DNA from: Octopus sinensis
Lineage: Eukaryota
Assembly: GCF_006345805.1 (NCBI RefSeq)
Contig: NW_021826681.1
Location: 1-12,150 of the forward strand
Length of the DNA stretch: 12,150 bases
Direction: 5' to 3'
Shown here piece after piece: positions 5,617 to 7,791 of this stretch. Below the pieces are notes generated by a model. It had not been told where the DNA came from and ran no database searches. It saw only the letters and a program-made list of their open reading frames with translations. Made by a program: the position numbers and the translations under genes. Position 1 is the first letter of the stretch, and each line of letters opens with the position of its first letter.

Positions 5617-5870
5617 ATACAAGGTAAGAAAATGGAGAAATACATCTAAATCAAATATCAATTACCAGATAATACTCAATCACATACTTTCTTAAACCAC
5701 CATATAAGAGACTGTGGGGTTAAACATAAAAAAGCAGAACAAATCAGTGTACATAAAGGAATGTACATAAAAAAGTGTACATAAAAGAGTAATGTTGTAT
5801 AATAAGTAGAATATATATAAAAAAGAGAATATAGATATAAGTAAATATAAATATAAGTATAGATTACATC
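5617..5870 (-). mobile_element. Inverted copy of the region downstream of the 7416-7551 hammerhead (putative Penelope-like pLTR/retrozyme fragment); may extend to ~5532
   Basis: Reverse complement of 7544-7791, about 95% identical by eye. The homology is certain; the element class is inferred. Confidence 0.7.
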
Positions 5871-6156
5871 CGCGCATGCGCATCAACGTGTGCACTCTTA
5901 CGCGCTGTGCTTGCGGACATTCGCGTGTACTTGTATGCATGTTCTGGTGTGCATCTTGGTGATCGTGCGTGCGAGAGGGATGAGTGCGTGTGTGCCCGGC
6001 CATGAATTCGCGTGTCCGTGCGGGGGCGTGCATGTACATGTATGTGCATGTGGATGCATTTCGGCGTATCCACTTATATTTACTATATTAGGTTTATCTT
6101 TGTGCTCTTCTTAATTTGTATTCCATTTATTTATCTATTTATCTATACATGGGATT

Positions 6157-6187
<31 letters not shown>

Positions 6188-6930
6188 TATATAATTATAT
6201 ATATATATATATATATTTATGTTTATTTATTTAATTATTATTTTGTTTATTGGCACTTACTAATTTACAATTAATTTAATTTATAATTAATGAACTTATA
6301 TCTAAATTAATAGTAACTTCTGTTTACTTTTTGTGTATGGTATATATACGTCTTTGGATGGGCAGACATATATTTTAATCTATGATTTAGTGGATGTGGT
6401 TTGAGGTGGCGAGGTGTGTGAAAATGTGTATGTGTACGTATGATGTTTTTTGTACATACAGGTATGCTCGTGAGTGGTGTACGGATGTATGTTTTTCTTA
6501 TACATATGAGTACGCAGGTGCGTATTGGGTATGTATTATGTATATGCGAATATTTATTCATGGTGGATATAAGTATAGGTTTTATTTGTACGTATGAGTG
6601 CGCAGATATATATTTAAATATGTATATATGTGTGTGCGAATGTTCCCTGACACAGTATATGAGAGTGTATTAATATTTATGGGTATATGCGGATGTACGT
6701 GTGAGTGTGTGTGTTAGTGTATAGACACTGCTGCCTGTACTGATTTGTCTATAAGCCATGCGATGACAGACATACACTCTGCAATTTAGTGAATGTGTAG
6801 AGATGTGTCGGGGTGTATTCATGTGTGTGTGCATGTGTGTGTGAGTTTTTGTGTGGATGTGTGGGTTTAGGGTTGGATGTGGATGTGTATGTTTTTCTTG
6901 TGCGGTGTGGTGGAGGTCGGGCGGCTCTCA
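5871..6930 (+). repeat. Degenerate TG-rich low-complexity DNA with a central (TA)n/AT-rich block (~6076-6310)
   Basis: Strong G+T bias on the plus strand with decayed (TG)n/(TGCG)n/(TATG)n; no credible ORF. Confidence 0.75.
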
Positions 6931-6940
6931 ACGGACCAAC

Positions 6941-7791
6941 CGTGAGGAAGACAATGATAATTTAAATTCAAATCCAATAGTGAATTTATGTCATAAGGAA
7001 AATTACTAACTGGAACTCGGACATACATATGTGCCACTTTGGATCCAAATGTAAGCGTTATTAATAATATTATGAATGATAATAATGGTAGCATTAATGG
7101 TATTGACAACGATAATGATGCAAACTTTAATGACACTTTAGAAATTAGTATGAAGTAATATAATGTACTATTGACTATGTATATTTGCATCTAGGTACTA
7201 ATATGTGTGTTTATTATCACAATATTAATTGAAAAACTGAAACATTGAATGTGGAACACATATATATGTTTACTAATTTATATTATTATTTACATCATTA
7301 TGTATATGTATATTTTTATATGTATAGGAGTGTGAGTATATGCACTCATATGTATATGTATATGTTGTATTATAGTATGTACCCCACCCATGTGGGTATA
7401 TATGTAGCCATTTATATTACATAATCTCCGAAGAGGCCTTATGATATTTTTGTAAATGTCTCATTTCTATCTATATATATACCATAAAAGGCTAATATTG
7501 GTAACATGAGACATACTTATCTACATGGCCGAAACAGCTGTAAGATGTAATCTATAATTATATTTATATTTACTTATTTTATATTCTCTTTTTATATATA
7601 TTCTACTTATTATACAACATTACTCTTTATGTACACTTTTTTATGTACATTCCTTTATGTACACTGATTTGTTCTGCTTTTTTATGTTTACCCCACAGTC
7701 TCTTATATGGTGGTTAATAAAGTATGTGATTGAGTATATCTGGTAATTGATATTTGATTTAGATGTATTTCTCCATTTTCTTATCTTGTAT
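6941..7791 (+). mobile_element. Putative Penelope-like element 3' end: ORF remnant (6941-7158), AT-rich 3' region and hammerhead motif
   Basis: Frameshifted peptide DNLNSNPIVNLCHK/GKLL resembles the LLNxRxELxxxCRHxxKxLL C-terminus of some Penelope-like GIY-YIG ORFs (from memory). An HHR lies ~260 nt after the stop codon. Confidence 0.5.
7416..7551 (+). ncRNA. Type I hammerhead ribozyme motif with long loop II and U4C core variant
   Basis: Stem I ATTAC(ATA)ATCT / AGAT-GTAAT; core CCGAAGA 7428-7434; stem II GGCC 7435-7438 / GGCC 7527-7530; GAAA 7531-7534; palindromic stem III CAGCTG; GUA cleavage after 7542; 9-bp hairpin ATGTCTCAT/ATGAGACAT inside loop II. Confidence 0.75.

Follow-up and report, generated by a model that had tools for sequence, protein, structure and literature searches.

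Does self-cleavage by a hammerhead ribozyme (HHR) leave a mark on the genomic copies of the retroelement that carries it? A locus of Octopus sinensis, at positions 5617 to 7791 of the first 12,150 nucleotides of contig NW_021826681.1 (assembly GCF_006345805.1), raises this question; the whole stretch of 12,150 nucleotides is called the window below. Here two copies of a short repeat lie in opposite orientations, and their homology ends 1 nt from the cut site predicted for a hammerhead-like motif in one of them. The role of the hammerhead in Penelope-like elements (PLEs) is still open. The hypothesis offered for this locus is that ribozyme cleavage sets the 5′ end of retrocopies, which is attractive and can be tested from a genome assembly alone. 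Our data suggest that the locus most likely holds, head to head, two copies of a retroelement's 3′ tail. The element would be short, non-coding and associated with a hammerhead, and the copies would most likely be tails of a PLE or of a non-autonomous element mobilised by one.

We aligned the two regions locally, each with its flanks, and obtained two arms:

5617-5870, minus strand: left arm, the repeat tail in inverted orientation (254 bp), with its 3′ end at 5617 pointing outward and its 5′ end at 5870.
7544-7791, plus strand: right arm, the other copy of this tail (248 bp), which runs on upstream into the hammerhead-like motif and adjoins (TA)n at its 3′ end, 7791.

The right arm is the reverse complement of the left arm read from 5870 to 5617, exactly the coordinates given in the original prediction. 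We found that 244 of the 248 aligned columns are identical. The remaining four are substitutions, a divergence of about 1.6%, and with six single-base gaps the identity is 96.1% over 254 columns. By blastn the right arm matches the left with E=2e-89. The G+C content of the arms is 23-24%. All six indels are single bases absent from the right arm, mostly in A/T runs, against four substitutions in all. So one-sided a pattern points to slippage or to polishing error in homopolymers, and not so much to neutral decay.

Homology between the arms stops abruptly at both ends. The innermost base common to both is G7544, and A7543 faces a G in the left copy. Nothing like the upstream half of the ribozyme, GGCCGAAACAGCTGTA, was found from 5871 onward in the left copy by alignment, by blastn or on reading the sequence, which bears out an earlier claim that this half is missing there. 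When 5500-7900 was compared with the whole window, no third copy of the arm turned up in its 12 kb, and the two inner flanks resembled each other only in (TA)-type low complexity. A further occurrence of GATGTAATCT, the first 10 nt of the arm, lies at 5492-5501 on the minus strand, inside the tail of the open reading frame (ORF) of a long interspersed element (LINE) and 116 bp past the 3′ end of the left arm. We judged this third occurrence to be chance and not a real relative, with about 0.02 matches expected and no flanking similarity. If the two arms are co-transcribed, they are predicted to form a duplex of 241-246 bp with a free energy near -350 kcal/mol. A double-stranded RNA (dsRNA) stem of about 250 bp and about 95% identity had been proposed, in good agreement with the 96% and the paired length computed here for a locus that is transcribed through.

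Upstream of the right arm, and extending into it, we found a sequence that can be drawn as the junction of a type-I hammerhead:

7416-7551, plus strand: type-I hammerhead-like three-way junction, with the predicted cut at 7542/7543.
7416-7420 and 7424-7427, plus strand: 5′ strand of helix I, with an AUA bulge at 7421-7423.
7428-7434, plus strand: hammerhead core, CCGAAGA, with C at position 4.
7435-7438 and 7527-7530, plus strand: helix II, GGCC paired with GGCC (4 bp), enclosing an 88-nt insert at 7439-7526.
7531-7533, plus strand: GAA, the conserved G12-A13-A14.
7534-7535 and 7540-7541, plus strand: helix III, AC paired with GU (2 bp), with a palindromic loop AGCU at 7536-7539.
7542, plus strand: A17, with the predicted cut directly after it.
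7543-7551, plus strand: 3′ strand of helix I, in which 7543-7546 pairs with 7424-7427 (4 bp) and 7547-7551 with 7416-7420 (5 bp).

All 15 of the proposed pairs are standard. The segment GAAAC...GUA at 7531-7542 contains G12-A13-A14, the pairs A15.1-U16.1 and C15.2-G16.2, and the cleavable NUH triplet. G10.1-C11.1 closes helix II and helix I is open, as in a three-helix hammerhead of type I. Helices I and II are already present in the unconstrained minimum free energy fold (-24.9 kcal/mol), and the fold constrained to the hammerhead has -20.7 kcal/mol, so the full hammerhead lies about 4 kcal/mol above the minimum. The 88-nt insert in helix II folds into an imperfect hairpin of its own. We considered whether this insert was a later insertion with GGCC as target duplication and rejected the idea, since without the insert helix II would be gone. 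Within 7500-7542 we also considered a more compact hammerhead, and none fits.

A frame of 10 codons (MAETAVRCNL*, 7525-7557) has its ATG in the 3′ strand of helix II and crosses the predicted cut 15 nt downstream; in the left copy this frame meets no stop for about 60 codons. It bears only a weak resemblance to the Anolis Poseidon element, whose ORF begins within stem II, 26 nt upstream of the cut (PMC11167929). The peptide translated from the arm has no words in common with any database protein.

How often would such a motif arise in DNA of this composition? We wrote a relaxed hammerhead descriptor in which position 4 may be any nucleotide and the loop of helix II may reach 120 nt. In the 24.3 kb of searched strand, 7416-7551 was the sole match on either strand. 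The expected number of matches per shuffled window was 0.013 in 300 whole-window dinucleotide shuffles and 0.008 in 3000 block shuffles, and it fell to 0.0007 when the descriptor carried the helix II observed. For a random motif to lie also within 2 nt of one of the two inner boundaries, our own arithmetic gives a further factor of about 4e-4.

Several features of this site are atypical of a hammerhead. The core fits C3-U4-G5-A6-N7-G8-A9 at six of seven positions (A is allowed at N7), and the misfit is C4 in place of U4. Mutagenesis has found position 4 to be essentially invariant. A canonical CUGANGA hammerhead was found nowhere in the window by descriptor scan. The Rfam hammerhead models (Hammerhead_1, HH9, HH10 and others) gave no match at E<=10 in cmscan, either with the whole window or with the 261-nt slice 7380-7640; the Rfam matches listed for the window are sub-threshold and of microRNA type, and lie on microsatellites and repeat palindromes. 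The 88-nt insert in helix II is also unusual for a hammerhead. The claim that an HHR is present thus holds for the three-helix architecture that spans the arm boundary, and the C4, the long insert and the Rfam result count against it. We conclude that the motif is a real but atypical hammerhead-derived sequence. Because a C sits at an essentially invariant position, the present copy is probably catalytically impaired or inactive.

The predicted cut after A7542 is offset by 1 nt from the homology boundary at G7544, the first common base, and a boundary at most 1 nt from the cut is what had been claimed. Numbered as in the hammerhead, the left arm has its 5′ end at position 1.2, and the ribozyme core is wholly absent from it. 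Since the motif is rare in shuffled sequence and its placement adds the further factor of about 4e-4, a link between arm boundary and ribozyme due to chance is very unlikely. In addition, helix I pairs bases within the right arm (7543-7551) with bases upstream of the arm. Therefore the right copy truly continues beyond the arm on its upstream side, and the left copy is a truncated one.

These results bear on an origin at the DNA level, in which the motif would be coincidental and the arms would stem from an inverted segmental duplication or would belong, as long terminal inverted repeats, to a foldback element or a non-autonomous DNA transposon. Repeats of 250 bp at the ends of a 1.67-kb non-coding core would suit such an element, and so would the lack of an Rfam hammerhead match and a core mismatched at an invariant position. 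However, a motif expected at most 0.008 times per shuffled window sits on the repeat boundary, and with helix I crossing that boundary the right-hand unit is longer than the supposed terminal repeat. We found no target-site duplication at 5616/7792 around 5617-7791: the flanks ...CAAATTACTA and ATATATATAT... share nothing beyond what (TA)n would give. An ORF and six-frame survey of the window with Pfam found no transposase-like ORF or remnant of one. We consider a DNA-level origin improbable.

If the arms are instead ends of a retroelement, what kind of element was it, and into what did it insert? The sequence between and beside the copies was laid out as follows:

5871-7415, no strand assigned: non-coding spacer that separates the hammerhead-like motif from the inner end of the left arm.
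5871-6060, no strand assigned: GC-rich, GCGT-like stretch in the spacer.
6125-6243, no strand assigned: (TA)n and AT-rich arrays in the spacer, with a (TA)n array at 6157-6220 by tandem repeat scan.
6360-6900, no strand assigned: GT-rich degenerate microsatellites in the spacer.
7789-7827, no strand assigned: (TA)20 microsatellite that immediately follows the right arm at its 3′ end and may have been an AT-rich target for insertion.

The outer flank of the left arm (...ATTACTA at 5610-5616) is AT-rich and not a microsatellite, and (TA)n arrays are very common in the window. On inspection neither arm has a poly(A) or LINE-type tail. The tRNA scan found no tRNA in the window, and therefore there is no sign of the head of a tRNA-derived short interspersed element (SINE). 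Exact patterns of the arm and of the junction gave zero matches in the metagenome, prokaryotic genome and viral contigs scanned.

The geometry resembles that of PLEs. Their insertions are heavily truncated at the 5′ end as a rule, and there they often bear an inverted, 5′-truncated copy, which leaves the unit between inverted repeats (PMC8557442). They favour microsatellites such as (TA)n, or AT-rich targets, and their hammerheads sit in the pseudo-long terminal repeat (pLTR) near the 3′ end (PMC8557442). Metazoan type-I hammerheads, including those of PLEs, have a short helix III with a palindromic loop of 2-4 nt and a 4-bp helix II with G10.1-C11.1, and are thought to act as dimers (PMC4209133, Cervera and de la Peña). 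Like PLEs of the Penelope, Poseidon and Neptune type, the octopus locus has a type-I HHR-like motif within a few hundred nt of the 3′ end, and this motif has a minimal helix III with a palindromic loop. It also resembles them in that a second, 5′-truncated copy is inverted and both 3′ ends point outward, in that poly(A) is missing, and in the AT-rich (TA)n on one of its flanks. The outward orientation had been likened to the inverted 5′ copies of Penelope insertions, and we confirm it (compare PMC8557442 and PMC11167929). Pairs with this orientation are accounted for by what PAc, the enzyme of an Anolis element of Poseidon type, does in vitro: it cuts both strands of the target and extends each of them (PMC11167929). 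In the PAc element the HHR cut site lies about 200 nt upstream of the start of reverse transcription (PMC11167929), compared with 248 nt from cut site to 3′ end in the octopus locus. Cephalopod genomes contain both PLEs and Rfam Hammerhead_1 matches (PMC13282606; PMC6962438).

Unlike PLEs, the octopus locus lacks the defining parts, and this counts against the assignment. The six-frame survey with Pfam found no reverse transcriptase (RT) or GIY-YIG ORF of PLE type, or remnant of one, in the window, although an upstream ORF of this kind had been suggested as a check. No direct pLTR repeat of the arm or of the hammerhead region was found in the window, and the two copies do not demonstrably abut. 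The C4 and the 88-nt insert in helix II also set the octopus hammerhead apart from those of PLEs.

Could the locus be a retrozyme? Non-LTR retrozymes of animals consist of tandem units, about 170-400 bp each, that carry type-I hammerheads and are expressed as circular RNAs (PMC7229834), and have been argued to be non-autonomous PLE derivatives (bioRxiv 10.64898/2026.07.22.740005). The octopus element resembles them in being short, AT-rich and non-coding, with a type-I hammerhead of the same architecture and a proposed dependence on PLEs. The distance from cut to 3′ end together with the ribozyme, about 380 nt, falls within the monomer sizes reported for a mussel. In contrast to retrozymes, the locus is not tandem, has one hammerhead motif and has no arm that runs into a second ribozyme; both copies end at a common 3′ terminus that is not a ribozyme. 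The descriptor scan found no second HHR in the window, a further point against a retrozyme-like unit. Tandem HHR-to-HHR units, another check suggested earlier, were absent from the window, where the single hammerhead-like motif belongs to no tandem unit. We rejected a tandem arrangement, as the region upstream of the ribozyme and the end and flank of the arm share only (TA)-type low complexity. The earlier attribution to a Penelope or retrozyme family therefore stands as regards geometry and the HHR-like motif, and not as regards the ORF, pLTR and tandem features. The locus behaves like a PLE-type insertion of a non-autonomous, hammerhead-bearing tail. Since the defining features were looked for in the window and not found, membership of either family is not established.

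Are the two copies the product of one event? They might be two independent insertions of an abundant family of short retroposons, 1.7 kb apart and in opposite orientations, the left one being 5′-truncated or tail-only. Repeats are dense in the window, and at least three more inverted pairs occur there (181-722/912-1271, 3626-3807/5105-5289 and 7864-8169/11045-11331); inverted pairs are thus common here, and the background for such a pair is higher. The spacer resembles ordinary microsatellite-rich host DNA with its own (TA)n, and the whole unit lacks a target-site duplication, both as expected for separate events. However, with only four substitutions in 248 bp, two young copies within 2 kb would require a very large and very recent family, and the arm has no third copy in 12 kb. 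Independent insertion does not by itself explain a truncation at the cut site, which fits cleavage or stalling alike. We therefore regard two separate insertions as unlikely.

The most likely identity of the locus is a remnant of a hammerhead-associated retroelement of PLE type. Given the repeat, the motif and a boundary that coincides so closely with the cut site, we infer priming and cleavage steps that would account for it. Both DNA ends of a break may have primed reverse transcription at the 3′ end of the element RNA, as PLE enzymes do in vitro. The short left copy would have been templated by the 3′ product of hammerhead self-cleavage, with the complementary DNA (cDNA) running off at the 5′ end that the ribozyme had made. 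The long right copy would have been templated by uncleaved RNA. Such events would leave a right copy that retains a now-degenerate type-I hammerhead about 250 nt upstream of the element 3′ end. The left copy would be this tail again, inserted the other way round, with the 3′ end pointing outward and the 5′ end 1 nt inside the scissile bond. The C4 of the retained ribozyme could be a later mutation, or the reason that this RNA stayed uncleaved. We favour this two-step origin tentatively, and put it somewhat short of an even chance.

A self-cleaving ribozyme that defines the 5′ end of reverse-transcribed RNA has precedents in the HDV-like ribozymes of R2, RTE and L1Tc elements, and the likeness extends to genomic copies that start at the cut. 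HDV-like ribozymes cut at their own 5′ edge and remain on the product. In contrast, a type-I hammerhead cuts near its own 3′ edge and the product loses the ribozyme, as the left arm has.

What, then, weighs against cleavage as the cause of the boundary? A single junction is available, and its boundary is offset by 1 nt from the scissile bond. Arrest of RT at a structured junction would leave an identical footprint. The two copies are 1.67 kb apart, and the sequence between them is microsatellite-rich, unlike an element interior, so that they do not visibly abut. For PAc, the only PLE with a biochemical study, insertion did not need HHR cleavage, as mutants with a dead HHR could still insert in vitro, and RNA-seq showed no reads ending at the HHR cut site (PMC11167929). 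PLE hammerheads cleave poorly in vitro, and the RNA-processing role proposed for them in 2014 came without in-vivo evidence (PMC4209133). The PLE literature cited here describes no truncation at the scissile bond.

Many of these points are shared by a closely related explanation. The same retroelement could have inserted head to head, with RT stalling or switching template at the base of the folded junction, or with trimming of the cDNA, so that the boundary would reflect structure and not catalysis. The 1-nt offset and the non-canonical C4 of the retained ribozyme agree with this, as do the poor cleavage by PLE hammerheads in vitro (PMC4209133), the PAc data on RNA ends and HHR-dead mutants (PMC11167929) and the usual 5′ truncation of PLE copies (PMC8557442). 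However, a stall would be expected 3′ of stable helices, before helix I unwinds at about 7551, and not at the junction nucleotide, and closeness to the scissile bond within a single nucleotide would be more specific than a pause site. We consider a boundary set by stalling or trimming rather doubtful. A footprint of cleavage in vivo is plausible on the evidence of this one junction. A broader proposal is that the PLE-associated hammerhead cuts in vivo and that its 3′ product, of about 250 nt with a 5′-OH, is an efficient template for target-primed reverse transcription, giving tail-only retrocopies with 5′ ends at the scissile bond. As a general mechanism we think this unlikely, at about the level of the stalling explanation.

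The remaining repeats of the window include two further dispersed families:

About 3340-3560, plus strand: SINE-like element, ending like its other copies in (CA)n/(TA)n.
7826-8170, plus strand: second copy of the SINE-like element.
11045-11331, minus strand: third copy of the SINE-like element.
11362-11570, plus strand: fourth copy of the SINE-like element.
1875-2282, plus strand: decayed fragment of the C-terminal part of a non-LTR (LINE) ORF2, with a ...GH(V/L)VRM...DR..WR..V tail.
5388-5510, minus strand: second decayed LINE ORF2 fragment of this kind.
9238-10300, plus strand: third decayed LINE ORF2 fragment of this kind.

The SINE-like element reads ...ACTGCGGCCATGCTGGAG...GGGGACGTAAACAC...GGGGGACAAACACAGACACACA and presumably resembles the common octopus SINE. 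Head-to-head copies at 11261-11440 form a palindrome, which gives sub-threshold false matches to the plant microRNA models MIR5070 and MIR6024. None of the three LINE ORF2 fragments is PLE-like by six-frame survey and Pfam. For the fragment at 9238-10300 the best database relatives are RT-domain proteins of flatworms, a coral and a gastropod (48-54% identical), none of them from octopus. Inside this fragment, 9680-9876 is a tandem repeat of about nine copies of a 21-bp unit, GGCAGCTTCACCATCTCGTCT, which are 94-100% identical and open in several frames on both strands.

Other head-to-head structures were also seen. At 235-843 lie about three tandem units of a 184-bp repeat whose neighbours are 92-97% identical, and inverted copies follow directly downstream (912-1271) with arms 87-94% complementary. 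At 3626-3807 and 5105-5289 an inverted pair of a different family, about 180 bp long and 91% complementary, lies on either side of 1.3 kb of microsatellites, namely (TCTA)n/(TCCA)n and (CA)n/(CACG)n.

If the pattern seen here is not general, the locus is an ordinary decayed pair of retroelement copies, and its sole practical consequence is a potential dsRNA hairpin of about 245 bp. If many copies of the octopus element start at the scissile bond, genomes would record the cutting of the ribozyme in vivo and the mobilisation of the cleaved tail. This would be the first genomic record of hammerhead activity in PLEs. Head-to-head, tail-only copies would then also supply long, perfect dsRNA stems in a lineage known for heavy ADAR editing.

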